Shown in pieces: positions 1 through 25,362 of a stretch of 64,000 bases of DNA. The translations under genes were made by a program, and so were the position numbers. Numbering within the stretch: position 1 is the first letter of the stretch; each line of letters begins with the position of its first letter. Under the pieces are notes generated by a model. The model did no database searches and was not told the DNA's origin. It saw only the letters and a list, made by a program, of their open reading frames with translations. The stretch is from Hyaloraphidium curvatum SAG 235-1. Taxonomy: Eukaryota > Fungi > Monoblepharomycota. The stretch spans positions 1 through 64,000 of the forward strand of contig JAIVFI010000006.1 in NCBI GenBank assembly GCA_025558095.1, read 5' to 3'.

Positions 1-132
1 GGCAGCAGCATGCAGTGTATCCTTTGGAATTCATCTCCCGGGACCTCGGCCGCCCGACGTTGACCGCAATCCGCGGAGGGTTTCCCCGCCCGGCCCTCGG
101 CCGACCGCGTCCCTCTAACCACGCGCCTCACC

Positions 133-4240: not shown

Positions 4241-5705
4241 ATGCCGGCTCCTTCCCGGTTCATCCTCGCGTGCCGGGCCAAGCGGTCCGAGGTGGTCTCG
4301 GCGCTGCTCCGCCGGGCAGACAGGGTCGACGTGATGCGGAGGAACAAGGCCGGGGAGACAGGGGTGGATGTTGCCCGTGCCGTGCGGGAGGCGGAGGCCG
4401 AGGCCGCGAGGGTCGCGGAGGAAGAGAGGAGGCGCGCGGAGGAGGAGCGCCTGAAGAAGGAGGCCGAGGTCGCGGCTTTCGCACGCGCGCTGGCGGAACT
4501 GGGATTGCACGCCGACGATAGGGACGGCGGGCCGGTGGAGGTGCCGCCACAAGCTCTCGCAGCTCCCGTCGGCGGGGCCGCGGGGCGCGCGGACAGCGCA
4601 TTTGAGCCGAGCACGAACCCGCCCCTCGGTCGCGTCCCCGACGCCCCCGCGCCTTCGCCTGCACCCGCACCCCCACCTCCCGTCGAGCGGCCCAGCGCAA
4701 CCAGCAGCTACGAAATCGACCCGAAGCACCTGCAACAGGGCGGCTTCCTCGGTCGGGGCGGCTTTGGGATGGTCATGGAAGGGACCTACCAGAAGCACAC
4801 CAAGGTCGCGCTCAAGATGATCAACGACGGCGCCGGGCTCTCGGGACGGCAGCTGCAGAAGGCCGTCGCGGGGCTGGAGCAGGAGATGGAGGTGTGGTCG
4901 CGGCTGCCGTACCACGCGAACGGTGGGTTGTCGCACGCCGAGCTGCTGGTCTGCCATTTCGCTCACCCCGTGTTCGACAGTGCTGCCGCTGATGGGATGG
5001 TGCCGCGAGCCCCTTTGCCTAGTCACGTTGCTCATGTCGGGCGGCACGGCCAAGCGGTACCTCGGCGGCCTCCGCCCGACGCCCTGGGAACCGCGTGCCG
5101 TGCACCGCCTTTTGTTCCAGGTGGCCCTGGGGATGCACCACCTGCACTCGCGGCCGACACCGATCCTGCACGTCGATCTCAAGGGCGACAACATCCTCGT
5201 GGACGAGAATGGCGTGGCCAAGGTTTCGGACTTCGGGATGTCGAGGATCCGCGCGACGGCGTCGCTGCAGTCGACGAAAGGGCAGGGCGGCACGCCCATG
5301 TACATGGCCCCGGAACGTGGTTCACCTGGCGGCGCGATAGCAGCGACCACACTGACCGGCGGCCCCGCCTCCGCAGTGTTCGTCCGCCCCCGCCCCAAAC
5401 CGGGCACGCCCACCGACGTCTACGCCTTCGGCATGACCATGTGGGAGCTCCTCTCCGAAGGCGACACGCCCCTCCTGGACGAGATCATGGACGAGGACAT
5501 GATGCTCCCCGGCCGCGGCGGCATCGACATGGAGCTCTTCGGCGCGCGCGTGCGGGACGACCCCGAGTTCAGGCCCAGGCGGCCCGACGGGTGCAACGGC
5601 GCGGCGTGGGAGCTGATGAGGAGGTGCTGGGCGGCGGACGCGGCGAGCAGGCCGGGGTTCGGGGAGATCGCGGACGAGCTGCAGCGGATCGTGGCGTCGC
5701 TTTGA
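4241..5705 (+). CDS. N-terminally truncated (LRR-less) ANK-remnant/coiled-coil/TKL kinase, copy E (introns 4923-4980, 5317-5376)
   Basis: An ATG at 4241 is in frame with FILACRAKRSEVV (partial ankyrin) and an E/R/A coiled coil. Kinase motifs are GRGGFG, VALK, HVDLKGDN, DFG, APE and DVYAFG. Homology to copies A/B starts abruptly at ~4257. Expression is unproven. Confidence 0.7.
4257..4826 (+). repeat. 570-bp inverted repeat, left arm (pairs with 7880-8449)
   Basis: Reverse complement of 7880-8449. Near-identical from ~4390 to 4826 with only isolated substitutions seen. Similarity ends right after AAGATGATCAACG. Confidence 0.9.
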
Positions 5706-5889
5706 TGCGGGCTTGCCCTTTGGCGTTGGAGCATTGCATGGAGTATTGTTACGATGCTTACTTTATGAAGCTTTCCACTATTAACGAGGAGAGGGAGCGG
5801 GTCGAGGGCGGGCTGGTGCCGGGAACTTCCATCGCCCCGGCCCCCGACGCGTGTCTCCCCCCGTGACCCTACGAATCCAACCTGCCGCC

Positions 5890-6829
5890 ATGCCGACCGC
5901 CAGCAACGCCGCCGTCAACCTCGTGTACGAGGTCCACGAACCCGCCCCCGGCGCACCCCCGCTCGGCGCGCTCCTGCTCCTCCCCGGCCTAGCGTGCTCC
6001 CTCGCCCTCTGGGACCCCGCGTTCCTCGGCCGCCTCACTCAATCGGGGTTCCGCGTGGTGGCGATGAACAACCGCGGCGCGGGCGGATCGACGCGCCCGG
6101 CGGGGAAGTGGACGCTGGGGGAGATGGCACGGGACTGCGCGGCGGTGCTCGACGCCGCCGGCGAACGGCGGGCCGCCGTCCTCGGGCACTCGATGGGGGG
6201 CATGGTGGCCATGCGGTTCGCGTGCGACTTTCCGGGGCGCGTCTCCTCCCTCCTGGTCCTCGGCGCGGGGGCGGGTGCAAAGTACGCGAAGTCGCCGGGG
6301 GCCGCGCTGGCGGGGTACTTCCTCGCGCTGCAGGCGTGCTCGTGGCTGCACCCCTGGGCATCCTGGGCCTCTTCCTCCGCGGGCGCATGGGTGCGCGACG
6401 CGGAGCGCGGGACGATCCAGAAGATGTTCGCGGCCATCTCGGTCTCCTCCGCGAACCCAGGCGGGGCGGCGGCCAACGCGGGGGAGCTCTGGGCGAGGCA
6501 CTGGGAACGCGCGGGGGACGGCCCGGCACTGAGCGAAGGCCAGGTGTGGGCGACCTATGTGGATCTGCTGGAGGACGTCAGGAAGCTATCGTGCCCGGCG
6601 GCGGTGGTGTGCGGGACGGAGGACTGCTTCCAGCCGAAAGAGGCGATCGAGGCATTGCACGGGGCGATCCCGGGGTCTGAGCTCGTGTGGCTGGAAGGGT
6701 GGGCTCCCGCGGAGTCGCTCCGCGGCGGGGTTTGGCTAACTGGCCCCCAGGTACAACCACTGGTACCCGCCCGACGTATGGGTCCGGATCGCCGAGATCG
6801 CGGCGCGCACTGCCGAGCGCGGCAGATAA
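5890..6829 (+). CDS. Alpha/beta-hydrolase fold protein, copy 1 (intron 6699-6750)
   Basis: Motifs are LLLLPGL (oxyanion region), NNRGAGGS, nucleophile GHSMGG, acid in GTEDC and His in GYNHW after splicing. Confidence 0.88.
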
Positions 6830-7012
6830 AGTCCGCCACGTGTCTATCATGACCTGTAATGTATCGGTATATTCTGTGTCGCGGGCTCCTATATGCTAGG
6901 CGCCAGACGACGCGTTTCTTCTAGAAGGAGTCAAAGGAGCTATTTTTCGTTCAGAAGAAGGGTCGACGGAGAACGTTTTGCCCACAAAGTACACGGCAAA
7001 CGCTCTCGAGCT

Positions 7013-9452
7013 TCACAGCGCATCGAGGATCCGCTTCATCTCGTCCGCAACCTCCCCGAACCCCGGCCTCGCCGCCGCATCCATCGCCCAGCACCTCTGC
7101 ATCAGCGCCCACGTGGCGTCCGGGATCCCCCGCGGCCGCTCGGGCCGGAAGTCGGGGTCGCTCCGGATGCGCGGCTTGAACTCCTCGAAGTCGATGCCGT
7201 GCCCGGGGATGATCATGCCCTCGTCCAGGAGCTCCTGCATGAGCGGGGTCTTGCCCTCGGAGAGGAGCTCCCACATGGTCATGCCGAAGGCGTAGACGTC
7301 CGTCGCGGTGCCCGGTGTCGGCCTGGGCTTCCTGAAAGCTGCCGGACGTGGGTGAGCAAAAGGGAAACTGCCCGAAACACCGGGTACACTCACACTCGGG
7401 GGCCATGAACACCGGCGTCCCTCCACCCGAGATGGTCGAGCGAAGCGAGGCCGTGGTCCTGATCTTGGCCAGCCCGAAATCGGATATCTTCGCCACGCCG
7501 TTCTCGTCCACCAGCACGTTCTCGCCCTTGAGGTCGAGGTGCAGGATCGGCGTCGGCAGCGAGTGCAGGTGGTTCATCCCGAGCGCGACCTGGAACAGCA
7601 GGCGGTGCACCGCGCGGATCTCCCACGGCGTTGGCTTGAGCTTTCGGAGGTAGTCCTTGGCGGTGCCCGCCATGAGCAGCGTGACGAGGCACAGGGGCTT
7701 GCGGCACCATCCCATGAGCGGTAGAACTGCGCGATCGTACCTCGTCAGCTGTTGAAACCCCACAGGCCCGCGCCGGAAGGGCTCACCGTTGACGTGCGGA
7801 GGCAGTCTCCCCCAGACTTCCATCTCCTTGTCAAACTCCGCGATCACACCTCCGCCTTCGAGGTCCGCGGCATCGATCCCGTTGATCATCTTGAGCGCCA
7901 CCTTGGTGTGCTTCTGGTAGGTCCCTTCCATGACCATCCCAAAGCCGCCCCGACCGAGGAAGCCGCCCTGTTGCAGGTGCTTCGGGTCGATTTCGTAGCT
8001 GCTGGTTGCGCTGGGCCGCTCGACGGGAGGTGGGGGTGCGGGTGCAGGCGAAGGCGCGGGGGCGTCGGGGACGCGACCGAGGGGCGGGTTCGTGCTCGGC
8101 TCAAATGCGCTGTCCGCGCGCCCCGCGGCCCCGCCGACGGGAGCTGCGAGAGCTTGTGGCGGCACCTCCACCGGCCCGCCGTCCCTATCGTCGGCGTGCA
8201 ATCCCAGTTCCGCCAGCGCGCGTGCGAAAGCCGCGACCTCCGCCTCCTTCTTCAGGCGCTCCTCCTCCGCGCGCCTCCTCTCTTCCTCCGCGACCCTCGC
8301 GGCCTCGGCCTCCGCCTCCCGCAAGGCTCGGGCAACATCCACCCCAGTCTCGCCCGCCTTGTTCCTCCTCATCACGTCGACCCGATCGGCCCGGCGGAGC
8401 AGCGCCGAGACCACCTCGGCCCGCCTCGCCCGGCACGCGAGGATGAACCCCGTGTCGCCCTGCGCGTCGGCGGCGTCGGCGTCCACCCGCGGATCGCCGA
8501 GAAGGAGCTCGACGCAGGCGAGGTGGCCCGCGTCGCAGGCGAGCATGAACCCGGTACGGTCCTCGGGATCGCAGACGTTGGGGTCCAGGGAGGGATCTGC
8601 GAGGGCAGCGACGACCTTGGTGAGCTCGCCGTCGCGGCAGGCGGAAAAGAAAGCAACGCGAAGGGCAAGCAGGCTCCGCTCTTCCGCCTCGCGGCGCTGA
8701 CGCTCCCGTTCGGCCTCCTGCCGGCGGGCTTCATCCTCGCGCTGCACACGGGCGCGCTCGGCTGCCTCGGCCTCCTGCCGCTTCTTCAGCTGCTCCCTGC
8801 GGGCGGCGGGATTCCGCGCGGCCGTCTCGACCTCCGAACGCAGATTCTCTAGAACGTTGTTTCTGCTAAGGTCGAGTTTTGATAGCGTCGAGTTGTGGGC
8901 GAGCGCCTCCGCAAGCGCGTGGGCGCCCTCGACCCCGATGGAGTTGTTGTCCAGGTACAGGGTCGTCAGCGTTCTGTTGCCCTTCAGCGCCTCGGCGAGC
9001 GCGCGGGCGCCACCGTCCCCGATGGAGTTGGACCCCAGGGACAGTGTCGTCAGCGCCTCGTTGCCCTTCAGCGCCTCGGCGAGCGCGCGGGCGTCCCCGT
9101 CCGAGATGGAGTTGCTGTACAGGTACAGGGTCGTCAGCGTTCTGTTGCCCTTCAGCGCCTCGGCGAGCGCGCGGGCGCCCTCGACCCCGATGGAGTTGCT
9201 GCCCAGGTACAGGGTCGTCAGCGTTCTGTTGCCCTTCAGCGCCTCGGCGAGCGCGCGGGCGCCCCCTTCCCCGATGGAGTTGTTGTGCACGTCGAGGGTC
9301 GTCAGCGTCGAGTTGCCCTTCAGCGCCTCGGCCAGTGCCCGCGCCCCGCTGTCCCCGAGTGACTGCCCGTCGGCATTGAGCACCGTGTTCCCCGCGAGCT
9401 CTTTCCGCCAGTACGCCGCATCGTTCTTCGCGCGGCCGAACAGCTTCTTCAT
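7013..9452 (-). CDS. LRR-ankyrin-coiled-coil-TKL kinase, copy A (introns 7727-7786, 7339-7393)
   Basis: Starts MKKLFGRAK and has 28-aa RI/NLRC3-like LRRs (LAEALKGNxxLTTLxLxxNSIGxxGARA), a coiled coil and ~3 ankyrin repeats (GFMLACDAGHLACVELLL; GDTGFILAC). Kinase motifs are GRGGFG, HLDLKGEN, DFG and APE. No signal peptide or TM. Confidence 0.9.
7880..8449 (-). repeat. 570-bp inverted repeat, right arm (inside copy A; pairs with 4257-4826)
   Basis: Direct sequence comparison with 4257-4826. Confidence 0.9.
8860..9390 (-). repeat. 84-bp coding tandem repeat array (LRR units of copy A: 5 internal units plus degenerate first and last)
   Basis: The recurring + strand block CCCTTCAGCGCCTCGGCGAGCGCGCGGGCG...CCCGATGGAGTTG appears at 84-nt spacing. 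Confidence 0.92.
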
Positions 9453-9507
9453 TGCCGTACAGCGGCGACCCGCGGCGCTCCACGCGGCCCCGCGCGGGAG
9501 GAGACCC

Positions 9508-9526
9508 GACTGACTGACTGACTGAC
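9508..9526 (-). promoter_or_regulatory. (TCAG)n tract upstream of copy A; homologous to putative tandem 3' splice acceptors of a 5'-UTR intron
   Basis: GACTGACTGACTGACTGAC on the + strand. The same element precedes copies B, C and D. In copy A the CTAAC branch-like motif is altered to CTCGC. Confidence 0.45.
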
Positions 9527-10014
9527 GAGCGGGGCGAGGGATTTCCCGTCGCCGCGAGCACCCGCAACTGCCCCCCGCGGCAGACACGCTCCCGACGCGC
9601 CTGCCGATGCCGACACGCGGAGGGACGTGCCCTCATGGCGGAGCTCCCCCGCGGGCCGCTCCCACCGCAGCAGAAGTGCGCGATGCTCACCGTGACGGTC
9701 GCCGTGCGGATGTACGACCTGCGCCCCGAGTCCTTCGTCGCGCTCGGCGAACGCGAGTTCCGCGCCCTGCGAACCTCGCTCGCCGCCTTCCGGGGACTCA
9801 CCTTCAGGTCGCCCCCCACCGCGACCCGCACGTGGCGCCCGTATCTCCTTCGCGGACCCACCGGTCGCGTCGGGCTCGTGGAGCTGCGTCAGGTGTGACT
9901 AAGCTGATGACCCGAACACCGGGTAGCGAGGCGCCGGCAAGCAAAAGTTGATACGTCGAGGCCGATATGAGGACGAGGACATGCAGATGGACGACGATGT
10001 TCGTTCCCCGGACT

Positions 10015-10360
10015 TCAATTCATCAAGTTGCGCCTCCTGCCCAACGAATCGAGACTGTAGCCGTTCCTCCACCTGTGCCTTCTTCCATGTCCCAGCAGCT
10101 CCTCCCGCGCCCTCTTCCACGGAGGACGTCCGCGCCGCGCCCCACTCGCCTCACGCGACGTGGCTCAGCCCGACCCACCTGATCCGCGTCGGGTACCTGC
10201 CACGGACTTGCGTCAGCCCCGCGTACACCTCCTCCGGCAACGAGAAACCCACCTCCCGCACACGGCCAGGTACACGCTCCCCGGGAACCCGCGGATCGAA
10301 GTCCCGCAGTCGACCCCGTTGCGCCGGAACCCGAGCGTGCGCGCGTCCAGGTCGAGGTCG
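10015..10360 (-). pseudogene. Duplicated 3' end (SPRY tail and last exons) of the BTB-SPRY gene at 25363-27919
   Basis: Aligns with ~25363-25705: DLDLDARTLGFRRNGVDCGTSIRGFPGSVYLAV...GYSLDSLGRRRNLMN* versus GYSLDSLSSRRNLMD*. Homology stops abruptly at 10360. Confidence 0.8.
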
Positions 10361-11186
10361 GCACCAGAAGGTCGTGCTCCCGGAGCGTCTTCACGATGCG
10401 GATCCTCCAGTCCGTGCCGGAGCGCAGCTTGATGGGCAGGAACTTCTGATCTTCCAGAGTCTTGACAAACTGATCCCGGTCGGCGAGCGAGCCCTCCGTC
10501 GGGATGAGGTACAACCAGGGGTACCCGTTCGGCCCGAATCGCAGCTTGGCGACCCAGGTGAAGCGGGCGTCCGCGGCCATGCCAAGGCAGGTCTTCAGCA
10601 CCGGCCCCACGAGGCTCTGCGCCATGTGGAGGGACATGTTCTCAGGGCGCCTGCCGAGGTCCAGCGCCACCATGGGCGCATCGTGAAGGCGAGGTAGGTA
10701 CGGCGCCCCCGCGCCGAAGGCGGAGTCGGGGAGCTTCGCGGGAGCACCGCACTTCATGAGGTGCGATTCCTTGAGGAGGGACATGGCCGTCGCCGGTGCG
10801 GCGAAGGAGATGATGCGCGACGTCGGGTTGAGAGTTGCGGCGTAGGTGGGCTGCGCGGGGGGCAGCGTAGGGCCCGCGACCGGGCGGCGGTCGCCGGTGG
10901 CGGCGTTGGGGGCGGGAGCCCCGGCCTGCGCGGCGGCTGCGGCGGCTGCGCTGGCGGGTGCGACAGGCTGCGCGGTTGCAGCGGTCGGCACGGCCGCCTC
11001 AGCCTCGGTCGGCTGCGCGGCGAGGGGTCCCTGAGTGGGGGATCCGGCGGAGGGTTGGGGGACCTTCGCGGCTTCGGGCATCGCGACCCCGGATTCGATC
11101 GAGGTGACTTCGGTCTGCTTGACAGCGCTTGCTGACAGCGCTGCCGCCATGTCCGCCGTCCCGCCAGGGGGAGGGGGGTCGGACAT
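10361..11186 (-). CDS. Orphan ORF (Ala/Pro-rich N-terminus plus ~150-aa globular-looking region), joined out of frame to the SPRY fragment
   Basis: ATG at 11186 (MSDPPPPGG...) opens a stop-free frame with protein-like composition (PTYAATLNPTSRIISF...GYPWLYLIP). No recognised family. Confidence 0.4.
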
Positions 11187-11269
11187 GTTTCGTCTGAATA
11201 GGCTGTTGCAGGGACGTCCATCGACCCAGCCCCGAAGCGTGCCTCCCCACAGAGGATCCGCCACGCGCG

Positions 11270-12190
11270 ATGCCGACGGCGCAGAACGGCCCCGCCTCCC
11301 TCTTGTACGGGGTCCGCGAGCCCCCCCGCCGCACCCCCGCTCGGCGCGCTGCTCCGCCTCCCCGGCCTCGCGTGCTCCGTCGCGCTCTGGGACCCCGCGT
11401 TCCTCGCCCGCCTCACACAACCGGGGTTCCGCGTGGTGGCGATGGACAACCGCGGCGCCGGTTCGTCGGCGAGATGGCGCGGGGCTGCGCGGCGGTGCTC
11501 GACGCCGCCGGCGAACGGCGGGCCGCTGGCCTCGGGCACTCGATGGGGGGCATGGTGGCCATGCGGTTCGCGTGCGACTTCCCCGAACGCGTCTCTTCCC
11601 TCCTGGTGCTCGGCGCGGGGGCGGGTGCAAAGTACGCGAAGTCGCCGGGGGCCGCGCTGGCGGGGTACTTCCTCGCGCTGCAGGCGTGCTCGTGGCTGCA
11701 CCCCTGGGCATCCTGGGCCTCTTCCTCCGCGGGCGCATGGGTGCGCGACGCGGAGCGCGGGACGATCCAGAAGATGTTCGCGGCCATCTCGGTCTCCACC
11801 GCGAACCCCGGCGGGGCGGCTGCCAACGCCGGGGAGCTCTGGGCGAAGCACTGGGAGCGTGCGGGCGAAGAACCGGCGCTGAGTGAGGGGCAGGTGACGG
11901 CGACCTATGTGGACTTGCTCGAGGACGTGGGGAAGATAAGCTGCCCGACGGCGGTGGTGTGCGGGACGGAGGATTGCTTCCAGCCGAAGGAGGCGATCGA
12001 GGCCCTGCACGGGGCAATGAAGGGGTCGGAGCTCGTGTGGTTGGAAGGGTGGGTAGCCGCCGCTATCCCCGGTTCGAGGGCTTGCTCAGCTGATACAACT
12101 CGGATCCGAAGGTACAACCACTGGTACCCGCCCGATGTATGGGTGCAGATCGCGGAGATCGCGGCGCGAACTGCCGAGCGCGGCAAGTAA
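11270..12190 (+). pseudogene. Alpha/beta-hydrolase copy 2 with compensating -2 and -28 nt deletions near the 5' end
   Basis: Paralog of 5890-6829 with GHSMGG, GTEDC and YNHW intact. Two deletions (~11325 and ~11467) scramble about 45 codons but restore the frame. Confidence 0.7.
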
Positions 12191-12394
12191 AGTCCGCCAC
12201 GTGTATCATGGCCTGTAATGTATCGGTAGCTGTGCCCCGAAACAGAGTCGCGGACCCCTCTATACCATGCGCCAGAGGACGCGTTTCTCCCCGAAGGGGC
12301 CAAAAGAGCTATTCTTTGCGAGTATAGGAAGAGTCGACGGAGAACGCCGCGAACCGGCTTCCCCAGAAGGTACACGGCAACCCGCTCTCGAGAT

Positions 12395-14884
12395 TCACAG
12401 CGCATCGAGTATCCGCTTCATCTCGTCCGCCACCTCCCCGAACCCCGGCCTCGCCGCCGCATCCATCGCCCAGCACCGCTGCATCAGCGCCCACGTGGCG
12501 TCCGGGATCCCCCGCGGCCGCTCGGGCCGGAAACCGGGGTCGCTCCGGATCCGCGGCTTGAACTCCTCGAAGTCGATGCCGTGCCCGGGGATGATCATGC
12601 CCTCGTCCAGGAGCTCCTGCATGAGCGGGGTCTTGCCCTCGGAGAGGAGTTCCCACATCGTCATGCCGAAGGCGTAGACGTCCGTCGCGGTGCCCGGTGT
12701 CGGCCTGGGCTTCCTGAAAGCTGCCGGACGTGGGTGAGCAAAAGGGAAACTGCCCGAAACACCGGGTACACTCACACTCGGGGGCCATGAACACCGGCGT
12801 CCCTCCACCCGAGATGGTCGAGCGAAGCGAGGCCGTGGTCCTGATCTTGGCCAGCCCGAAATCGGATATCTTCGCCACGCCGTTCTCGTCCACCAGCACG
12901 TTCTCGCCCTTGAGGTCGAGGTGCAGGATCGGCGTCGGCAGCGAGTGCAGGTGGTTCATCCCGAGCGCGACCTGGAACAGCAGGCGGTGCACCGCGCGGA
13001 TCTCCCACGGCGTTGGCTTGAGCTTTCGGAGGTAGTCCTTGGCGGTGCCCGCCATGAGCAGCGTGACGAGGCACAGGGGCTTGCGGCACCATCCCATGAG
13101 CGGTAGAACTGCGCGATCGTACCTCGTCAGCTGTTGAAACCCCACAGGCCCGCGCCGGAAGGGCTCACCGTTGACGTGCGGAGGCAGTCTCCCCCAGACT
13201 TCCATCTCCTTGTCAAACTCCGCGATCACACCTCCGCCTTCGAGGTCCGCCGCATCGATCCCGTTGATCATCTTGAGCGCCACCTTGGTGTGCTTCTGGT
13301 AGGTCCCTTCCATGACCATCCCAAAGCCGCCCCGACCGAGGAAGCCGCCCTGTTGCAGGTGCTTTGGGTCGATTTCGTAGCTGCTCGTCGCGCTGGGCCG
13401 CTCGACGGGAGGCGCGGGCACGGGTGAAGGCGTGGGCGCGGGGGGTTCGGGGTCGCGATCGAGGGGCGGGTTCGTGCTGGGCTCGAACGCGCTGTCCGCA
13501 AGCCCCGGATCCCCGCCCGCGGCAATCTGGGGCTGCACCTCCACCGGCCCGCCTTCCCGATCGTCGACGTGCAGTCCCAGTTCCGCCAGGGCCCGCGCGA
13601 CGGCAGCGATCTCCGCTTCCCTCGCCCGGGCGGCGGCGGCGATCTCCGCCTCCCTCTTGACGCGCTCCTCCTCAATGCGCCTCCGTTCTGCCTCCGCAAC
13701 CCTCGCGGCCTCCGCCTCGGCCTCCCGCACCGCACGGGCCACATCGACCCCCGTCTCCCCCGCCTTGTTCCTCCTCGTGACATCCACGCGGTCGGCCCGC
13801 CGCAGTAGCGCCGAGACCACCTCGGACCGCTTTGCCTGGCACGCGAGGATGAACCCCGTGTCGCCCTGCGCGTCGGCGGCGTCGGCGTCGACCCGCGGAT
13901 CCCCGAGAAGCAGCTCGACGCATGAGAGGTGGCCGCCTGCGCAGGCGAGCATGAAAGCAGTGCGGTCTTCGGGATCGCGGAGGTTGGGGTCCAGGGAGGG
14001 GTCCGCGAGGGCGGCCGCGAGCTTGGGCGGGTCGCCGTCGCGGCATTCGGAGAGGAGCGAGGTGCGAAGGGCCTTCAGACGCTGCTCCTTCGCCTCGCGG
14101 CGTTGCTGCTCCCGTTCGGCCTCCTGCCGGCAGGCTTCCTCCTCCCGCTGCACGCGGGCGCGCTCGGCTGCCTCGGCCTCCTGCCGCTTCTTCAGCTGCT
14201 CCCTGCGGCCGGCGGGATTCTTTGCGGCGGTCTCGATCTCCGAACGCAGATTCTCTAGAACGTTGTTTCTGCTAAGGTCGAGTTTTGATAGCGTGGAGTT
14301 GTGGGCGAGCGCCTCCGCAAGCGCGTGGGCGCCCTCGTCCCCGATGGAGTTGTTCTGCAGCCAAAGGGACGTCAGCGCCGAGTTGCCCTTCAGCGCCTCG
14401 GCGAGCGCGCGGGCGCCCCCGTCCCCGATGGAGTTGCTGGGCAGGTCCAGCCTTGTAAGCGCCGTGTTCGCCTTTAGTGCCTCCGCGATTGCGCGGGCGC
14501 CCTCGACCCCGATGGAGTTGTTGTCCAGCCAGAGGGTCGTCAGCACCGAGTTGCCCTTCAGCGCCTCGGCAAGCGCGCGGGCGGCCCCTTCCCCGATGGA
14601 GTTCCTGTGCAGGTACAGGGTCGTCACCGCCGAGTTGCCCTTCAGCGCCTCGGCGAGCGCGCGGGCGCCCCCTTCCCCGATGAAGTTGTTGTCCAGGCTC
14701 AGGGTCGTCAGCGCCGAGTTGCCCTTCAGCGCCTCGGCCAGTGCCCGCGCCCCGCTGTCCCCGAGTGACTGCCTGTCGGCATCGAGCCGCGTCTTCCCGC
14801 GAGCTCTTTGCGCCAGTACGCCGCATCGTGCTTCGTCGGCTCGGCAGGGGGCTTCGCGCGACCGATGCCAAGCAGCTTCTTCAT
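12395..14884 (-). CDS. LRR-ankyrin-coiled-coil-TKL kinase, copy B (1-nt frameshift at ~14797: pseudogene or sequence error)
   Basis: Same architecture as copy A, and the kinase region including introns is near-identical to A. The frame from ATG 14884 (MKKLLGIGRAK...ELAG) is broken by GGG where the paralogs have GGGG. Confidence 0.8.
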
Positions 14885-14940
14885 CGCTGCGCAGTGGCGG
14901 CCCGCGGCGCTCCGCACGGCTCCGCGGGGGAGCGGCACTC

Positions 14941-15011
14941 CTGACTGACTGACTGACGAGCGGGGTTAGGGATTTCACATCGCCGAGCCATCGAAAGCAC
15001 GCCGTCCCTAC
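14941..15011 (-). promoter_or_regulatory. Putative 5'-UTR intron of copy B with four tandem TCAG acceptors
   Basis: The minus strand reads AG|GTAGGG...CCCTAAC CCCGCTCG TCAG TCAG TCAG TCAG. The distance to the first AG is 59 nt, matching the typical intron size in this window. Confidence 0.55.
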
Positions 15012-15379
15012 CTCGCCCTCCCCCGACGCGTCCCGCCGGGGCAGATACCCTCCCGACGCGCTTGCCGTCGCCAACAGTGTGGACGGACGAGCCCTCGTGG
15101 CGGAGCTCACTCCCTCTCGAGCGTCTGCAACGCGCCCTGCGGGTGCCGCGTTCCCGCGCCGTGTCCCGCCTGATCGATGCGGGCCTCGCGCGGCGCGTAC
15201 GAGCTGCTCCTGCAGGTACTGATGAGGGACTTCGACCTCCGCGCGGGCGTCCGACACGACAAGACTTGGGAGCGCCCGGCGCCGGTTGCAGTTCGCGGGT
15301 GGTCCGGCGGGGGTCGGCAAGCTCTCCCCGGTGAAGAAGCTCCGCCTGTCGGGCTCCTTTCCCGTCGAGCGGGACCCCT

Positions 15380-16181
15380 GGCGATTCTCCCGCGGCGGAC
15401 ACGCTCTCCGACATCCGCAACCGCGCCGTCTCCCTCGTCCGTGACTACGGCATCGAGCACGCCATCCTCGGTCTGGAATGCCTGTCGCGCCTTCTCGGCG
15501 CGGAGGCCCGCCGCTTCCGCCCCGCGAGGGTGGTCGACCGCCCGCGGCACCACGACACCGCCATCCGGAAGCTCCTCTCGTCGGGGAGTTTCGGGTGCAC
15601 GGAGCCGTCGGCGATGTTCTCGGACTGCCTGGACTGCCGCCTCGGCCGCGGGACGCGCGCGGGGGATGGAGACGAGCTGGCTCCGCGGGGACGAGCTGCG
15701 CAGGATCGCCGGCTAGACGAGGGAGATCAACAGTGACCGTGCTGCGGGATGCGGAGGATTGGGGACGGGAGATGGGTTTCTCGAGGGTGTTTGTGGTCGA
15801 GGAGATCCGGAACGGATGTTGTCTGCAGCTGGGGTCGAGAAGCCACCGGCCCACGCGTCCGCCACGCCATCCGCCATCGGGTCGGGCCCCACCGTCCGAC
15901 CAGCGGTCCAGCGACCACCCCAAGAAGGACGGATTCGCGCGGTGCTCGAGGTGCAAGCGGGATCATTACTGCTCAAAGCAGTGCCAAGTGGCTGCGTGGC
16001 CGAAGCACAAGGTGGTTTCCCCGGCGATGGCGGCGCTGAACCCGGCGACGTAAATCGGTGCGGCACGAGGCGGCCATCTTTTGCGCGCCTTCTGACAGTG
16101 CTCCCGCGGCAGATCCCCCATCACACCGTGGAAAGGCCGGAGTACGCGTTGCGATGCCTGGAAAGGACGAGCGAAGGGTAG
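15380..16181 (+). pseudogene. Degenerate MYND-type zinc-finger gene, copy 1 (5' boundary uncertain)
   Basis: FARCSRCKRDHYCSKQCQVAAWPKHKVVS is the MYND C-terminal half with the last Cys replaced by Ser. Upstream frames are fragmented. Confidence 0.55.
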
Positions 16182-16557
16182 GTGCGAAGGGAAAGGTTGT
16201 TGGAGGCGTCGGTCGGACGCAATCTATGGTGGTGATGGGCTCCACAAGGCTCTGATGCCTCAATAGACAACGGTCTTTGGCAATGAGCTGCTTTTGTTTT
16301 CACGCGCCCGTGGCGTGGCGCTTGTCACGGGCGTGGGCGATGCCCGATCTGATCGAGTCAGCGGTCGAGTCGCGAACAGCCCGCGCGCCCACCGCAACTC
16401 GTTCTGCCTTGCACGTTCCCCCACGCTCCCCGGCCCAATCTCCACCTTCCAACTGCCCCGCGCGCCTCGTCCTCCTTTTCCCGTGGGCCCGCGCGCCGCC
16501 GCCCCGCGCCCCCCGCCGACCGCCCGTCCCGCCCCGCAGGAGCCCCCGCCGAACGAT

Positions 16558-17260
16558 ATGGCGTCCTTCTTCTCCGCGCTGCGCTCCCGCTTCCACGCTT
16601 GCTTCGACGGCGACCGCGACGCCCTCCCCGCCCGCCCCCGCGTCCCCGCCCCCGACGCCGCCGAGCTCCCCCCGCTCCCGTCGTTCCGCCGCTCGCTTAC
16701 GGTCCCCGTCGGCGACGCTCCCGACGACGTCCGACAGCTCTTCGAGGGCATGGGGCTGCCGGCAGATGCGACGGCCACCCTCCTCCTCACCATGTGCGTC
16801 CCGTTCTCCATCCCGCGGTTTGGCACCCGGATGCTGATCTCGATCCGATCCCCCGATCTCCCGCGTTTCAACCATCTCACAGGCTCTGCGATGCCGCGTG
16901 GACCGCCGGGACGATGGGCCGCGAGACGGTGCTCGTCGCTGGGAAGGGCCGGGCATTCGTGCAGGTGTGGCAGGCCGGTCCGCGGGACGCCAAGATCCTC
17001 GGGGTCGAGCTGATGGGGAAGTTCGGCCAGGCCAACATCACCGTCGAACGTGCGTTCGGTCCGCTCCCTGCGTCGTGCAGCCGCTTACCATGCACCGCCC
17101 TCGATCCGCAGTCGACGCCTCCCTCCTCGCCAAGTTTCCCGCCGCCCGCACGCACATGTTCGCCATCGCCGGGGTGGAGCTGGTGCCGGACAGGAGGGGC
17201 GACGTGGGGAAGATGAGGCGGGTGGTGGAGGAAGCGGGGTTGAAGATCGACGAGTGGTAG
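16558..17260 (+). CDS. Hypothetical protein (orphan family), copy 1, 3 exons
   Basis: MASFFSALRSRFHACFDG...LLLTM|LCDAAWTAG...NITVE|LDASLLAKF...EEAGLKIDEW*. Two GT-AG introns give a continuous frame, and a conserved duplicate starts at 21417. Confidence 0.65.
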
Positions 17261-17494
17261 ATCCGCCGCAGGTGGGCTCGGCTCTCGGATGCGGATGGAG
17301 GATATGGGAGGCGACGGAGAGGGGATGATTGATCAGCTAGAGGAGAACGGGTGATTTGTATTCCGTGTTGCGGCGCGGGTGCCGGCCAAGGTGTCTACAG
17401 ATACCTTTCGATCGACGCCTCCCCTTTTCCGCGCTCGGAGCGTTGCGGGTCCGGGCCTAGCCGGAATCGCGCTGGGTTCCAGGACGGCACATGG

Positions 17495-19485
17495 CTACCA
17501 CGCCTCCATTTCCGCGCAGACCTCGACGAACGTCGGCCTGTCCGCCGGGTTCTGCGCCCACATGCGCTCCATGAGGTTCCACATCCTGTCGTCGACGTCG
17601 TCGGGGCGCTCGGGCCGATCTCCTTGCTTGACAGCCTCCCGAAGCTGTCCAATTCCGTGAAGACCCAGTCGGACCAAGGCGGGTGCGAGCCACCCACCAA
17701 CAGCGCACCCAGCCCTTGAAACGGGTAGCCGCCCTCGTCGACGACCTCGTAGCACACCATGGCGAACGCGTACACGTCCACGGGCGGGCGGAGCTTGCCG
17801 CCGCGCCAGAGTTCCGGGGCCATGAACGGCGGGGTGCCGCTTGCGGAGCCCCCGGCATCGCGATCGCCGCTGGTGGTGCCCAGGGAGAGGTGCGTGCGGA
17901 CCTTGGCGAGGCCGAAGTCGGCGATCTTGGGGATGTCGTGGTCTGCAGTGGCCGGGGGTTAGATGCGCATGCACCCCCGGCCCGAGGGCCGCGCGAGCCC
18001 ACCGATCATGATGTTGGCGCACTTGAGGTCCCCGTGGAGCACCTTGTACGAGTGCAGGTACGCCATTCCCGCGGCCGTCCCACGGAGGTACCTGAGCCCG
18101 ACTGTCTGGTCCCAGCGCAGTTGTTCGAGCCGCGCACGCATGCTGCCGTCGGTCAGCTCCGAGATCAGAAGGGGCGGAGACTCGCAAAAGGCGAGGAGGG
18201 GGAGCACTGCGGCAAACGTTGAGCCGGGACGGCGAAAGTGCGAGATGAGAGGCCCACCATTCCGCTGGTTCAGCCCATCCCACACCGCAATCTCCTTCAG
18301 GAACATCTGGACCGTCTCGGGGGTCACGTCGCCCTTGACGGTCTTGACGGCCACACGCGTCGCGCCCCTGAGCACGCCACGGTAGACCGTGCCGAAGGAG
18401 CCCTGGCCGAGGATGGACGCTTTCTCGGTGGAGTAGGCGACCTCGTCCTTGGCGATGCGGAGCTTGGAGAGGAACGCCGAATGGTCCGATTTGGTGCTTC
18501 CGGGGGAGGCATGCGATCGGGACGGATCCGAAGGGAGCTTTGTCACCTGTGACGAGCTCCAGGAAGAAGCCGCCGGCGCGGCCGGGGCGCGCTTGGCCAT
18601 CTCCGCCGCTTCGGCCAGCCTGGGCTCCACCTCTTCCTCCCTCAGCCTCAGCTCCTGCAGACGACGTGCGACCTCGGCTTCCTGCTCCCGCACGCGGGCG
18701 GCCTCGTCCGTGAGCCGCTGCTGCCTTTTGACCTCCTGCTGCTGTCGCTGACGGAGGGCTTCTTCCTCGAGGCGATTGCGTTCCCGCAAGGCAGTCTGCC
18801 GCCGCCGCTCTTCCTCCTGCTGCTGCCGCGCGCGGGCGCGCTCGGCTGCCTCGGCGTCCTGCCGCTTCCGCATCTGCTGCCTGCGCCCGGCGGGATTCCT
18901 CGCGGCCGTCTCAATTTCCGAAAGCAGATTCTCGGGAAGGCCGTTCTCCCTGATGTCGAGGTCCGAGAGCGTCAAGTTGTGAACGAGCGCCTCCGCGAGC
19001 GCGCGGGCTCCCTCGACCCCGATTGAGTTGTGGTACAGGCCCAGGGTCGTGAGAGTTGTGTTTCCCCTCAGCGCCTCGGCAAGCACGCGGGCGCCCTCGA
19101 CCCCGACGGAGTTGTGATGTAGGTACAGGGTCGACAGAGCCGAATTCCCCTTCAGCGCCTCGGCGAGCACGCGGGCGCCCTCAACCCCGATGGAGTTGCT
19201 GCCCAGATTAAGGGTCGACAGAGCCGAATTCCCCTTCAGCACGTCGGCGAGCGCGCGGGCCCCCCCGTCCCCGATGGAGTTGCTGGCCAGGAACAGGGTC
19301 CTCAGCGCCGAGTTCCCCTTCAGCGCCTCTGCAAGCGCGCGGGCCCCGCTGTCCCCGAGTGATTGCTCGATAACAATGAGCTCCGTCTTCCCCGCGAGCT
19401 CTTTCCGCCAGTACGCCGCATCGTCCTTCGTCGGCTGGCGCGCACTCTCCTCCGTCGCGCGGCCGATGCCCAGAGGCTTCTTCAT
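17495..19485 (-). CDS. LRR-coiled-coil-TKL kinase, copy C (no ankyrin; 4 internal LRRs; 3 kinase introns)
   Basis: Starts MKKPLGIGR, followed by 28-aa LRRs and a Q/E/R coiled coil. Kinase motifs are GQGSFG, VAVK, HGDLKCAN, DFG, APE and DVYAF, ending AEMEAW*. Confidence 0.9.
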
Positions 19486-20286
19486 CGTGGCACGCCGGGG
19501 GGCCCGCGGCGCTCCGCAACGGCCCGCGGGGGAGTGGCACTGTCCTGACTGACTGGCGAGCGGGGTTAGGGATTTCCCCATCGCCGAGCCCTCAAAGCAC
19601 GCCGACCTCCCCGCTCCGCCGACGCGTCCCGCGGCAGACACCTTCCCGACGCACCTGCCGATGCCGACAGTGTGGGTGGACGGGCCCTCGCGGCGGACGT
19701 CCCCCTCGAGGTCGCGGCGCGGCCTCCGCGCTCCGGCCGACCGCCCGGCCCGCGCCGCCCTGTCCCGCCTAATGCGGGCCTCCCGCGGTGCCTACGCATG
19801 GCCGCTGCCCGCATTAATGCCGGAACTCGACCCCGCACGGCCATCGGGGACGAGGAAGCCCGGGAGCGCCCGGCGCGCGTGGCAGTTCGGGGCCGGCCCG
19901 GCGGGTGGCTTCAAGTTCTCGCCGGTGAAGAAGCTGCCTGTCTGGCGCCCTTCCCGTCGAAGGGGAATCCCACCTACTGCGCGAATCTCGAGCACCTCGA
20001 CTGCGTGGAGCTGCCACTTCGGCGTGCTGCTGGCCACCATCGAGCCCGCCGCGCGGAACCTGCGCTTCCGGGCCTTCCGCGACGCCGGCAACGACTTCAC
20101 CGCTGCCGATAAGGACGCAGCGGACCGCCGGTACGGTGCCCTCGACGTGGGCGGGCCCGCGCCCGGGAGCTGCAGCGCGCGGAAATCCGGACCGTCGGCC
20201 ACGCGAGATCGATCCACCTGCTCAACTTCATCTCGGACGGCGCCCAGCAGCCATGGGCTTCCTTTGAGACGGCCGCGACCCCGTTG

Positions 20287-21030
20287 ATTCCCCGCGGTGG
20301 ACACGCTCTCCGGCATCGGCAACCGGCCGTCTCCTTCATCGGGGACTACGCCATCGACCACCGCGTCCTCGGCCTGCAATGCCTTTTCGGCCTTCTGGGG
20401 CACACAGTCCGGCCGGTCCGCCCCCAGGAGGGCGCTCCTCGGCCGAGCAGGTTCCGCGAAGGACCCGGACGCCCGCCTGCAAGTGTGGCACTGCGATACC
20501 GCCATCCGGAAGCTCCTGTCGTCCGAACGGCTCGGGTACGCGGAGCTCTCGGCGATGTCCGCGGAATGCCTGGACTGCCGCCTCGGCCGCGGGACGCGCG
20601 CAGGGGATGGAGACGAGCTGGCTCCGCGGGGACGAGCTGCGCGGGATCGCCGGCGAGACGAGGGAGATCGTGACCGTTCTGCGGGATGCGGAGGATTGGG
20701 GACGGGAGATGGGTTTCTCGAGGGTGTTTGTGTTCGAGGAGATCCGGGACGGATGTTGTCTGCAGCTGGGATCGAGAAGCCACCGGCCCACGCGTCCCCC
20801 ACGCCATCCGCCATCGGGTCGGGCCCCACCGTCCGACCAGCGGTCCAGCGACCACACCAAGAAGGCCAGACTCCCGCGCTGTTCGAGGTGCAAGCGGGAA
20901 CACTACTGCTCAAAGCAGTGCCAAGCACAAGGTGGTTTGCCCGGCACTGGCGGCGCTGAACTCGGCGACGGACAGATCCCCCATCTTGCCGTGGAGTACG
21001 CGTCGCGATGGCTGGAAAGGACGAGTGAGG
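20287..21030 (+). pseudogene. Degenerate MYND-type zinc-finger gene, copy 2
   Basis: Paralog of 15380-16181. RCSRCKREHYCSKQCQ is followed by a ~17-nt deletion (removing most of VAAWPK) that frameshifts before HKVVCP. Confidence 0.55.
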
Positions 21031-21416
21031 GGCGGTGCGAAGGGAAAGGTTGTTGGAGGCGTCGGCCGAACGCGATCTTTGGCGGTGATAGGTGATAGTT
21101 CCACAAGGCTTCTGAGGTCACAATAGACAACGGACTTTGGCAACGAGCTGCTTTTGCTATCATGCGCCCGTGGCGCTTGTCACGGGCGTGGGCGATGGGA
21201 TCCCGATCTGATCGAGTCAGCGGTCGAGTCGCGAACAGCCCGCGCGCCCACCGCAACTCGTTCTGCCTTGCACGTTCCCCCACGCTCCCCGGCCCAGTCT
21301 CCACCTTCCAACTGCCCCGCGCGCCTCGTCCTCCTTTTCCCGTGGGCCCGCGCGCCGCCGCCCCGCGCCCCCCGCTGACCACCCGTCCCGCCCCGCAGGA
21401 GCCCCCGCCGAACGAT

Positions 21417-22138
21417 ATGGCGTCCTTCTTCTCCGCGCTGCGCTCCCGCTTCCACGCCTGCTTCGACGGCGACCACGACGCCCTCCCCGCCCGCCCCCGC
21501 GTCCCCGCCCCCGACGCCGCCGAGCTCCCGCCGCTCCCGTCGTTCCGCCGCGCGCTTACGGTCCCCGTCGGCGACGCTCCCAACTCCGTCCGCCACTTCT
21601 TCGGAGCCATGGGGCTGCCGGCAGATGCGACGGCCACCCTCCTCCTCACCATGGTGCATCCCGTTCTCCATCCCGCAGTTCTCCATCCCGCAGTTTGGCA
21701 CCCGGATGCTGATCTCGATCCGATCCCCCGATCTCCCTCGTTTCCACCATCTCACAGGGTCTGCGATGCCGCGTGGACCGCCGGGACGATGGGCAGCGAG
21801 ACGGCGCTCGTCGCTGGGAAGGGCCGGGCATTCGCGCAGGTTTGGCAAGCCGGACCGTGGGACGCCAAGATCCTCAGGGTCGAGCTGATGGGAAAGTTCG
21901 GCGAGGCCAACATCACCGTCGAACGTGCGTTCGGTCCGCTCCCTGCGTCGTGCCGCCGCTGACCATGCACCGCCCTCGATCCGCAGTCGACGCCTCCCTC
22001 CCCGCCAGCAAGTTCCCCGCCGTCCGCACGCACATGTTCGCCATCGCCGCGGTGGAGCTGGTGCCGGACAGGAGGGGCGACGTGGGGAAGATGAGGCGGG
22101 TGGTGGAGGAAGCGGGGGTGAAGATCGACGAGTGGTAG
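21417..22138 (+). CDS. Hypothetical protein (orphan family), copy 2; first splice site appears shifted by 1 nt, possibly defective
   Basis: Close paralog of 16558-17260. It has an extra G at the first donor and a 15-bp duplication (TTCTCCATCCCGCAG x2) in intron 1. The frame stays open if intron 1 is retained. Confidence 0.55.
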
Positions 22139-22313
22139 ATCCGCCCCAGGTGGGCGCGGCTCTCGGGTGCGGATGGAAGATAAGAAAGGCGACGGAGCGG
22201 GGATGATTGATCAGCTAGAGGAGAACGGGTCATTTGTATTCCGTATTGCGGCGCAGGTGCGTTGCGGGTCCGGGCCTAGTCGGAATCGCGCTTGGTTCCA
22301 GGACGGCACATCG

Positions 22314-24477
22314 CTACCACGCCTCCATTTCCGCGCAGACCTCGACAAAGGTCGGCCTGTCCGCCGGGTTCTGCGCCCACATGCGCTCCATGAGGTTCCA
22401 CATCCTGTCGTCGACGTCATCGGGGCGCTCGGGCCGATCTCCTTGCTTGACAGCCTCACGGAGCTGCCGGAATCGTCTGTCGAGACCAAATCGGAGCAAG
22501 GCAGGTGCGAGCCACCCACCAACAGCGCACCCAGCCCTTGAAACGGGTACCCACCCTCGTCGACGACCTCGTAGCACACCATGGCGAACGCGTACACGTC
22601 CACGGGCGGGCGGAGCTTGCCTCCGCGCCACAGTTCCGGGGCCATGAATGGGGGTGTGCCGCTTGCGGAGCCCCCGGCATCGCGATCGCCGCTGGTGGTG
22701 CCCAGGGAGAGGTGCGTGCGGACCTTGGCGAGGCCGAAGTCGGCGATCTTGGGGATGTCGTGGTCTGCAGTGGCCGGGGGTTAGATGCGCATGCACCCCC
22801 GGCCCGAGGGCCGCGCGAGCCCACCGATCATGATGTTGGCGCACTTGAGGTCCCCGTGGAGCACCTTGTACGAGTGCAGGTACGCCATCCCCGCGGCCGT
22901 CCCGCGGAGGTACCTGAGCCCGACCGCCTGGTCCCAGCGCAGTTGTTCGAGCCGCGAACGCATGCTGCCGTCGGTCAGTTCCGAGATCAGCAGGGGCGGG
23001 GACTCGCAAAAGGCTAGGAGGGGGAGCACTGCGGCAAACGTTGAGCCCAGGACAGTGAACGCGCGAGGAGCGAGGGCGGCCCACCGTTGCGCTGGTTCAA
23101 CCCGTCCCATACCGCGATCTCCTTGAGGAACATTTGCACCGTCTCCGGGGTTACGTCGCCCTTGATGGTCTTGACGGCCACCCGCGTCGCGCCCCTGAGC
23201 ACGCCGCGGTACACCGTGCCGAAGGAGCCCTCGCCGAGTATGGACGCTTTCTCGGTGGAGTAGGCGACCTCGTCCTTGGCGATGCGGAGCTTGGAGAGGA
23301 ACGCCGAATGGTCCGATTTGGTGCTTGCGGAGGAGGCATGCGATCGGGAGGGATCCGAAGGTAGCTTGGTCACCTGTGACGAGTTCCAGGAGGTAGCCGC
23401 CGGCGGGGCCGGACCGCGCTTGGCCATCTCCGCCGCCGCTGCCATCCTGCGCTCCACCTCTTCCTCCCTCAGCCTCAGCTCCCGCAGACGACGTGCGATC
23501 TCGGCCTCCTGCTCCCGCACGCCGGCGGCCTCGTCCGCGAGCCGCTGCTGCCTTTTGGCCTCCTCCCGCCTGCGTGCATCCTCGTCGAGCCGTTTGCGCT
23601 CCCGTTCGGCGGCCTCCCGCCGCCGCACCTCCTCCTCCTGCTGCTGCTGCTGCGCGCGGGCGCGCTCGGCTGCCTCGGCCGCCTGCTGCTTCTGCATATG
23701 CTCTCTCCGGCCGGCAGGATTGTTGACGATCGTCTCGATTTCCGAAAGCAGATTCTCCGGAACGCCGTTCCACTTGAGGTCGAGGTCCGAGAGCGTGAAG
23801 TTGTGGATAAGGGCTTCGGCGAGGGCGCGCGCGCCGTCAACTCCGATGGAGTTGTTGCGCAACCACAGGGTCCTCAGCGTTGAGTTGACCTTCAGCGCCT
23901 CGGCGAGCGCGCGGGCACCCTCGACCCCGATGGAGTTGTTCCCCAGGTGCAGGGTCGTCAGCGTCGAGTTGTCTTTCAGCGCCTCGGCCAGCGCGCGGGC
24001 GCCCTCGACCCCAATGGAGTTCCTTGGCAGGTCCAGCCTCGTAAGCGCCGAGTTCGTTTTCAGCGCCTGCGCAAGCGCGCGGGCGCCTTCGACACCGATG
24101 GAGTTGTCGTCCAGCCAAAGGGTCGCCAACGCCGTGTTCACTTTCAGCGCCTCCGCGAGCAGACGGGCCCCGCTGTCCCCCATGGAGCTCCTGTGCAGAA
24201 ACAGGGTCGTCAAGGTCAGGTTCCCCTTCAGTGCCTCGGCGAGCGCGCGGGTCTCCTTGTCGCTGGCTGACTGCCAGCCGGCATTGAACGTCGTCTTCCC
24301 CGCGAGCTCGTTGCGCCAGTATGCCGCGTCACCCTTCGTCGACTCGGGAGCGGCCTTCGGGGCCTGCGGCGCCGGGGCGGGCTGCACCGGGCGGGGAGCG
24401 GGGGCCGCGGCGGGTTGCTGCACCACTCGCGCATCCCGGTCCTCCTTCGTGCGGCCGATGCCAAGCAGCTTCTTCAT
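22314..24477 (-). CDS. LRR-coiled-coil-TKL kinase, copy D (no ankyrin; 5 internal LRRs)
   Basis: Starts MKKLLGIGRTK, followed by 28-aa LRRs and a poly-Q/E coiled coil. The kinase is near-identical to copy C (GEGSFG, HGDLKCAN). Confidence 0.9.
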
Positions 24478-24533
24478 CGCTGCGCAGTGGCGGCCCGCGG
24501 CGCTCCGCACGGCTCCGCGGGGGAGCGGCACTC

Positions 24534-24604
24534 CTGACTGACTGACTGACGAGCGGGGTTAGGGATTTCACATCGCCGAGCCATCGAAAGCACGCCGTCC
24601 CTAC
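24534..24604 (-). promoter_or_regulatory. Putative 5'-UTR intron of copy D with four tandem TCAG acceptors
   Basis: Near-identical to 14941-15011: GTAGGG donor, CCCTAAC branch and (TCAG)4. Confidence 0.55.
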
Positions 24605-24660
24605 CTCGCCCTCCTCCGACGCGTCCCGCCGGGGCAGATACCCTCCCGACGCGCCTGCAG

Positions 24661-25335: not shown

Positions 25336-25362
25336 TGCCAAAGTGGCTCTGTCGGTTCGACT

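Follow-up and report, generated by a model that had tools for sequence, protein, structure and literature searches.

Tandem LRR-kinase genes with a variable predicted binding face in the early-diverging fungus Hyaloraphidium curvatum

The first 64,000 bp of a 909,727-bp contig of Hyaloraphidium curvatum (G000:C6:1-64000; hereafter the window) carry a tandem array of four genes, A to D, all on the minus strand, each encoding leucine-rich repeats (LRR), a long charged helix, and a non-RD kinase of the tyrosine kinase-like (TKL) group. We read the array, with a probability of roughly 0.55, as tandem duplicates within a Hyaloraphidium-specific family of cytosolic sensor-kinases whose LRR appears to be diversifying. 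The evidence is the placement of variation on a predicted binding surface, strong constraint on the kinase, and mosaic exchange among the copies. An initial annotation, made from the DNA letters alone, had described the array as a diversifying immune-type locus of an early-diverging fungus. Protein searches bear out the description of the host (Monoblepharidomycetes, Chytridiomycota), whose genome comprises 31.9 Mb in 55 contigs at ~68% GC; the immune claim is weighed below.

All four LRR-kinase genes of the initial annotation were confirmed by Pfam, Tandem Repeats Finder (TRF), and self-BLAST (Table 1). Pfam detected LRR_6, Ank (ankyrin repeats, ANK), and PK_Tyr_Ser-Thr in A and B, and LRR_6 plus the kinase in C and D; TRF found 84-bp (28-aa) repeat arrays of 4.3-5.4 copies in each gene. 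Among solved structures, rabbit NOD2 (5irm) was the best match to the LRR domain (1e-36), with further matches to ribonuclease inhibitor (RI; 1e-27 to 1e-30), NLRP5, NLRP14, and NLRP3. Because of these matches the label "RI/NLRC3-type" is correct, and they agree with the 84-bp period on a 28-aa unit. The linker between LRR and kinase is rich in E, R, Q, and A (45-50% E+R) and contains 9-14% hydrophobic residues. In the AlphaFold2 (AF2) monomer model of C, the LRRs (per-residue confidence, pLDDT, >90) are followed by a single 92-residue helix (198-289), a disordered stretch, and the kinase. Composition and this model make a charged single alpha-helix no less likely than a coiled coil, and the coiled coil first proposed has been downgraded. 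Pfam detected neither NACHT nor NB-ARC when run on the exons of A-D and on the related protein P0024, and it found no Roc or COR; the interval between LRR and kinase is occupied by the charged helix and, in A and B, by ANK as well. Hydropathy gave no transmembrane (TM) helix or signal peptide: the 19-residue maximum (KD19) was 1.42, located in ANK and kinase cores, and the N-termini are hydrophilic. The chains thus lack a signal peptide, a TM helix, and NACHT/NB-ARC, as first described.

All five kinases, those of A-D and of an inverted, LRR-less copy E, retain the Gly loop (GxGxxG), the Lys of VA(L/V)K, the catalytic Asp and Asn, DFG, and APE, and are predicted from these intact motifs to be catalytically competent. 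The Arg of HRD is replaced in every copy (HLD in A and B, HVD in E, HGD in C and D), and these are therefore non-RD kinases. The closest solved kinases were RIPK4, RIPK3, RIPK2, CTR1, and ABL (E 1e-18 to 1e-23); the TKL assignment made at the outset was upheld, and by these structures the kinases are RIPK-like. Kinase searches also returned plant CrRLK1L and RLK-Pelle kinases at ~30% identity, beside RIPK3, ANKK1, and Mycena TKLs, a placement made without a kinome-wide tree. No RHIM, death, or CARD module of the RIPK type was found, and the ANK repeats of A and B lie N-terminal to the kinase. Non-RD kinases have reportedly been tied to innate-immune signalling, by Dardick and Ronald in 2006.

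Variation among the LRR units was scored in the register L1-x-x-L4-x5-L6-x7-x8-N9 of the 28-aa unit, using 19 core units from A-D. Entropy at positions 5, 7, and 8 reached 2.8, 2.8, and 2.0 bits; elsewhere the invariant scaffold stood at 0-0.6 bits, positions 25 and 27 at ~2.0, and several others at 1.2-1.5. The LRR strand in the AF2 model of C ends at unit position 5, and positions 5, 7, and 8 are therefore predicted to lie on the concave face and the exit loop. Residues at the hypervariable positions are rich in W, Y, F, H, D, and R, a composition typical of binding hot spots. Mean nucleotide identity between the units of one gene was 0.83 in A, 0.74 in B, 0.74 in C, and 0.71 in D, as compared with 0.44-0.69 in 24 other loci. 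By the Nei-Gojobori method, A and B differ at positions 5, 7, and 8 by 20 nonsynonymous changes (Nd) and 1 synonymous change (Sd), giving an omega (dN/dS) of 5.1 against 0.64 in the rest of the LRR; for C and D, omega was 1.4-2.2 at these positions and 0.21-0.28 in the rest. Taken across every pair of units, dN at positions 5, 7, and 8 was 0.95 and scaffold dS 0.375 (ratio 2.5, bootstrap 1.9-3.6); the ratio of dN to scaffold dS was 1.6 for a concave set defined a priori (positions 2, 3, 5, 7, 8). On these counts, variation appears to be concentrated where the LRRs are predicted to bind ligand, and the kinase is strongly conserved.

The remaining domains told a different history from one another. 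Between C and D, 34 synonymous and 4 nonsynonymous differences were observed in the kinase segments (the N-lobe part of exon 1 plus exons 2-4). Kinase omega was 0-0.09. The C-D LRR had a dS of 0.55, far above the 8-9% divergence of the flanks. Between A and B, the ANK region had an omega of 0.19 at a dS of 0.50, kinase exon 2 was identical over 330 nt, and the kinase N-lobe had a dS of 0.027. The first 138 codons of E were near-identical to those of A (dS 0.058); further on, dS was 0.55-0.74 (kinase part of exon 1, exon 2) and 0.36 (exon 3), with an omega of 0.2-0.8. Single LRR units also matched across paralogs, A3 and D5 at 92% identity and B5 and D4 at 88%, the latter pair with a common D-L-P motif. 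From the region-wise dS values and these unit matches it follows that the domains have each followed a history of their own, with frequent gene conversion between members of the array. B and D, which lie in separate duplication blocks and carry kinases of different clades, match at 98% identity over 214 bp around their start codons and 5' regions (14852-15065 and 24445-24658); this identity suggests a recent conversion of the promoter or 5' untranslated region. Signs of birth and death were also present, B being frameshifted and E truncated.

A genome-wide census of the LRR-kinase architecture, combining PF07714 and PF13516 matches with a scan of 26 loci, counted at least 21 genes in LRR-then-kinase order on at least 13 contigs of the H. 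curvatum genome. The family loci hold 2-14 full-length scored LRR units, with up to 16 unit matches in L011, and one cluster of the family lies at C33:490-532 kb. TKL-type kinase matches numbered at least 158 in the genome as a whole, and their repeat partners were many. In the kinase tree, E (P0006) fell in a clade (100/99 support) whose every other member is an LRR-kinase; the kinases of A and B are of the same type as E and were placed in that clade through it. The kinases of C and D fall among other kinases of this genome that carry ANK repeats, Sel1 repeats, or none, and pair, with weak support (85/77), with the ANK-kinase P0121 (73% identity). With E, A, and B in one kinase clade and C and D in another, one LRR module is therefore carried on two kinase clades. 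In the Hyaloraphidium proteins P0121-P0131, kinases that share 50-73% identity with the C and D kinases are joined to ANK, Sel1, or no repeats, which makes for a modular repeat-plus-kinase superfamily in this genome. Outside Hyaloraphidium, matches to both kinase clades reached at most 38-54% identity, and none paired either clade with LRR_6. The reverse order was seen in P0090 of Gonapodya sp. JEL0774 (kinase-Sel1-LRR) and in P0069 of Eukaryota sp. GEM-RC1 (kinase then LRR), which points to independent fusions of RI-type LRRs and TKL kinases. Other Hyaloraphidium LRR-kinases, named "kinase-like domain-containing protein" at NCBI (among them P0024, P0021, P0007, P0077, P0078, P0031), resemble the array in the order of RI-type LRR, helix, and non-RD TKL kinase, and have intron positions in common with it (kinase hidden Markov model, HMM, 80 and 191); they differ from it in that A and B carry the ANK insertion and C and D a kinase from the ANK/Sel1-kinase clade.

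Table 1. Array genes, copy E, and co-duplicated neighbours in the window.
Feature	Position	Strand	Description
Gene A	7013..9452	-	LRR 9389-8802, charged helix, ANK ~8666-8268, linker, kinase ~7958-7016; two short GT-AG introns, 7786-7727 and 7393-7339
Gene A 84-bp LRR unit array	8902..9358	-	5 core units, 83% mean nucleotide identity
Gene B	12395..14884	-	A-like layout; transcribed; 1-nt deletion
Gene C (= P0038, 608 aa)	17495..19485	-	LRR, 92-residue helix, disordered linker, kinase; exons 19485-18259, 18207-18004, 17943-17698, 17644-17498
Gene D	22314..24477	-	intact open reading frame from ATG at 24477
Copy E (P0006, partial)	4257..5705	+	5'-truncated LRR-less kinase gene, inverted; HVD, DFG, APE present; exons 4334-4921, 4980-5315, 5379-~5702
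Alpha/beta-hydrolase gene, copy 1	5851..6852	+	intact; Abhydrolase_1 E = 5.5e-23; co-duplicated with A
Alpha/beta-hydrolase gene, copy 2	11200..12190	+	8-, 2-, and 28-nt deletions relative to copy 1; frameshifted
zf-MYND gene, copy 1	15478..16053	+	co-duplicated with C
zf-MYND gene, copy 2	20379..21095	+	co-duplicated with D

Genes A, C, and D are open from ATG to stop. Gene D has an N-terminal insertion of 28 codons and an extra degenerate LRR unit, and its true start precedes that of the NCBI model P0100, which begins at 24183. Gene B carries a frameshift at ~14798, where a 1-nt deletion in a G run (GGGG to GGG) lies ~86 nt past the ATG; an independent DNA contig from a separate study (X2 record 15) crosses the site ungapped and agrees with the deletion. 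Gene B is probably a young pseudogene, or else starts elsewhere. Four NCBI proteins fall on the window, P0038 (gene C), P0100 (gene D), P0006 (copy E), and P0003 (a fragment of B), and no NCBI protein model for gene A was among the matches; A, B, and E were analysed as spliced models and searched exon by exon.

Of three sequencing runs, X1 contained canonical spliced GT-AG joints at the predicted introns, and X2 and X3 were without such joints, from which we take X1 to hold transcripts. The two introns of B homologous to those of A (13168-13109, 12775-12721) were spliced out in X1 contigs, as was a plus-strand intron at 12048-12110, and the A introns are supported by spliced contigs aligned at the homologous B sites. 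Deep RNA contigs aligned to B carry the base of A at 11/11 sites where A and B differ; B-specific RNA contigs covered 13335-14184 with 0 mismatches at a depth of ~50. Both A and B are transcribed. A appears to be more abundant than B, although contig depth is a poor gauge of expression level.

Both segmental duplications of the initial annotation are real by self-BLAST, at 87-92% identity (5811-9430 and 11201-14835, 87%; 15546-19356 and 20487-24180, 88-92%), and each took along a neighbour gene. An inverted match at 82%, 4257-5690(+) with 8449-7028(-), corresponds to copy E, whose 5' end falls within the last ANK repeat; the LRR-less copy noted at the outset is confirmed and is 5'-truncated and inverted as well. 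The description of the locus as strewn with pseudogenes was not borne out: the intergenic DNA contains the co-duplicated hydrolase and zf-MYND genes, with one hydrolase frameshifted, and a family HMM scan found no family fragments between the kinase genes. Hydrolase copy 2 is transcribed despite its deletions, with the GT-AG intron mentioned above removed, and is probably a pseudogene.

Several other observations were made in the window. The contig starts inside a gene whose peptide (window 1-600) resembles a segment of a mechanosensitive channel; no telomeric repeat was found in this stretch, and a subtelomeric location is not supported. A pair of TKL kinases without RI-type LRRs, at 1094-1996 on the minus strand and at 50582-51531, is 77% identical. 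A tandem duplication joins 45007-46643 with 46961-48592 (84% identity), and a 350-bp repeat occurs at 10011-10360 and 25359-25705 (93% identity). RNA and DNA contigs both stop at 10360 with one common unmatched sequence, which suggests a dispersed repeat or a boundary unlike that of the assembly.

The array shares parts with several known receptor systems. Animal NLRs (NOD2, NLRC3, NLRP) and ribonuclease inhibitor have the same 28-aa LRR type, and NLRs too are cytosolic, but the array is without NACHT/NOD, CARD, and PYD and has a fused kinase as its output in place of oligomerisation-driven adaptor recruitment; membership of the NLR/STAND class was rejected for lack of NACHT/NB-ARC, despite the RI/NLR-type LRR. 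LRRK/ROCO proteins (LRRK1/2, Dictyostelium Roco) likewise place a cytosolic (ANK-)LRR region N-terminal to a RIPK-related TKL kinase, whereas the array lacks Roc/COR, its LRRs are RI-type, its proteins are much shorter, and its family is expanding in tandem; having neither Roc nor COR by Pfam, it was rejected as a ROCO/LRRK member. RIPK4/ANKK1 and RIPK2/3 are its best solved kinase relatives, RIPK4 also having an H-L-D non-RD loop, and ANK is likewise combined with a kinase there; identity is only ~30%, however, the ANK of the array is N-terminal, and RHIM, CARD, and the death domain are missing. Plant LRR receptor-like kinases (LRR-RLKs) and receptor-like cytoplasmic kinases (RLCKs) also pair an LRR sensor with a TKL kinase in tandem birth-and-death clusters, many immune members being non-RD. 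Unlike plant LRR-RLKs, the array has 28-aa RI-type rather than 24-aa plant-specific LRRs and neither a signal peptide nor a TM helix, and on the last two counts a plant-type LRR receptor kinase was rejected. Fungal NLR-like WD40/ANK/TPR proteins resemble the array in their near-identical units, few hypervariable surface positions, shuffling, and combinatorial domains, but the array has no NACHT/NB-ARC and its repeats are LRRs. High internal conservation with hypervariable surface sites in fungal NLR repeats is said to have been described by Paoletti and Saupe and, in 2014, by Dyrka.

The initial annotation had held that described fungal NLR-like receptors use WD40, ANK, or TPR sensors with a nucleotide-binding domain and not LRRs. 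Reviews say likewise that the repeats of such fungal proteins are of the ANK, WD, or TPR kind, LRRs not being used (PMC9119436, PMC10197012), and pattern-recognition receptors based on LRRs are stated to be missing from fungi (PMC2939053, PMC9119436, PMC10197012). LRR and kinase in one chain had nonetheless already been listed in chytrids. Soanes and Talbot (2010) reported no LRR receptors in fungi and listed four Batrachochytrium dendrobatidis genes with LRR and kinase and no TM helix (PMC2939053), and in a 2026 paper LRR-kinase orthogroups were most abundant in a Lobulomycetales metagenome-assembled genome (PMC13618815). A statement that fungi have no such thing is therefore overstated. These chytrid proteins are alike to the array in having LRR and kinase in one chain, a comparison made by description, and no B. 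dendrobatidis or Lobulomycetales protein was among the close matches to the array proteins. The literature search returned no paper on Hyaloraphidium kinases, and the kinome papers were silent on chytrid LRR-kinases. The window contributes the array of near-identical units, an ANK-bearing variant, a chassis drawn from two kinase clades, and a mosaic that runs domain by domain.

Structurally, each protein is built as follows: an RI/NOD2-type LRR horseshoe, then a long rigid charged helix and a disordered segment, and finally a non-RD TKL kinase, with ANK added in A and B. The concave face of the LRR would bind a protein or small ligand; binding would relieve autoinhibition of the kinase by the LRR, or cluster the molecules, and the kinase would then phosphorylate downstream targets. 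As the near-identical 84-bp units are exchanged between paralogs and three surface codons per unit appear to diversify, new binding specificities would arise on a constant signalling chassis. Candidate ligands would be non-self (microbe, virus, parasite, conspecific) or environmental or endogenous proteins.

A number of points weigh against diversification. Omega inside codons 5, 7, and 8 alone is 1.8, with a bootstrap confidence interval of 0.9-3.5 that includes 1. The estimates come from one method only (NG86), which underestimates dS at ~68% GC with strong codon and third-position GC (GC3) bias; the samples are small, and LRR units are not independent. What looks like fast point substitution can also result from gene conversion and from units being shuffled between paralogs. 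In any RI-type LRR, positions 5, 7, and 8 are the least constrained, and across the whole family, too, they vary most; the high unit identity is confined to this array, and one of its four genes (B) is frameshifted. The initial claim of a diversifying immune-type locus is thus sustained in part: the variable predicted binding face, birth and death, and mosaic exchange stand, and the excess of dN is not significant against dS of the same codons. The main rival, in our judgement improbable, holds that the genes are ordinary lineage-specific signalling kinases on a generic LRR scaffold, shaped by relaxed constraint at exposed sites and concerted evolution of young repeats. The wealth of TKL-type matches and their many repeat partners fit such a family, as do the rampant gene conversion, the omega not significantly above 1 in the hypervariable codons, and the finding that, in every member of the family, variability is highest at positions 3, 5, 7, 8, and 25. 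It is opposed by dN at positions 5, 7, and 8 (0.9-1.2), which exceeds both scaffold dS and the 9-14% noncoding divergence of the duplicated blocks, by the W, Y, F, H, D, R-rich residues found there, and by the escape of precisely these codons from homogenisation. That the array is an artefact of assembly, or a locus already dead and in decay, is scarcely credible and is effectively refuted for A, C, and D. The frameshifts in B and hydrolase copy 2, the truncation of E, and the position of the array 4-25 kb from the contig end could be cited in its favour, but the copies are 8-25% apart and are matched by paralog-specific DNA and RNA contigs with 0 mismatches, on which grounds the artefact was rejected; the intact A, C, and D, the low kinase omega, and the observed splicing speak against decay.

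Within the sensor-kinase reading, the immune case is a narrower proposition. It would make the array an innate-immune or non-self (including allorecognition) receptor system free of a nucleotide-binding domain, a fungal counterpart of NLRs or RLCKs, and we regard it as a tentative and rather unlikely extension. All features that back the sensor-kinase reading apply to it too, and to these may be added the non-RD, RIPK-like kinases, the NOD2-like LRRs, the conserved repeats with hypervariable surface sites (a pattern also reported for fungal NLR repeats), the clustering of genes with pseudogenes, and the combination of LRR, ANK, or Sel1 sensors with related kinases. Yet the array genes are tied to no pathogen, virus, or cell death, and no death-fold, TIR, HET, RHIM, or pore-forming domain was found in the chains. 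The RNA run is of unspecified culture and library type, and the depth of A in it says nothing on induction by challenge; the 2026 chytrid paper only speculates, naming immunity or the sensing of hosts as the role (PMC13618815). The data fit a sensor of environmental or endogenous proteins just as well. A bolder version, which we hold to be unlikely, is that the NOD2-type LRR-kinases form a non-self repertoire generated by shuffling of 84-bp cassettes and by re-pairing of sensors (LRR, ANK, Sel1) with RIPK-like non-RD kinases, and so represent an independent fungal form of LRR immunity.

Read as a diversifying family of sensor-kinases, the array shows the signature of a recognition receptor: a constant chassis, a binding face that appears to diversify, exchange of cassettes, and birth and death of copies. 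If what is sensed is non-self, LRR-based intracellular immunity would reach the fungal kingdom, with a route from sensor to kinase that bypasses NOD oligomerisation, and the family would be a natural source of modular, retargetable LRR binders. If the ligand is another, the array would still be an unusually clear example of how a small eukaryotic genome evolves proteins as mosaics, domain by domain.

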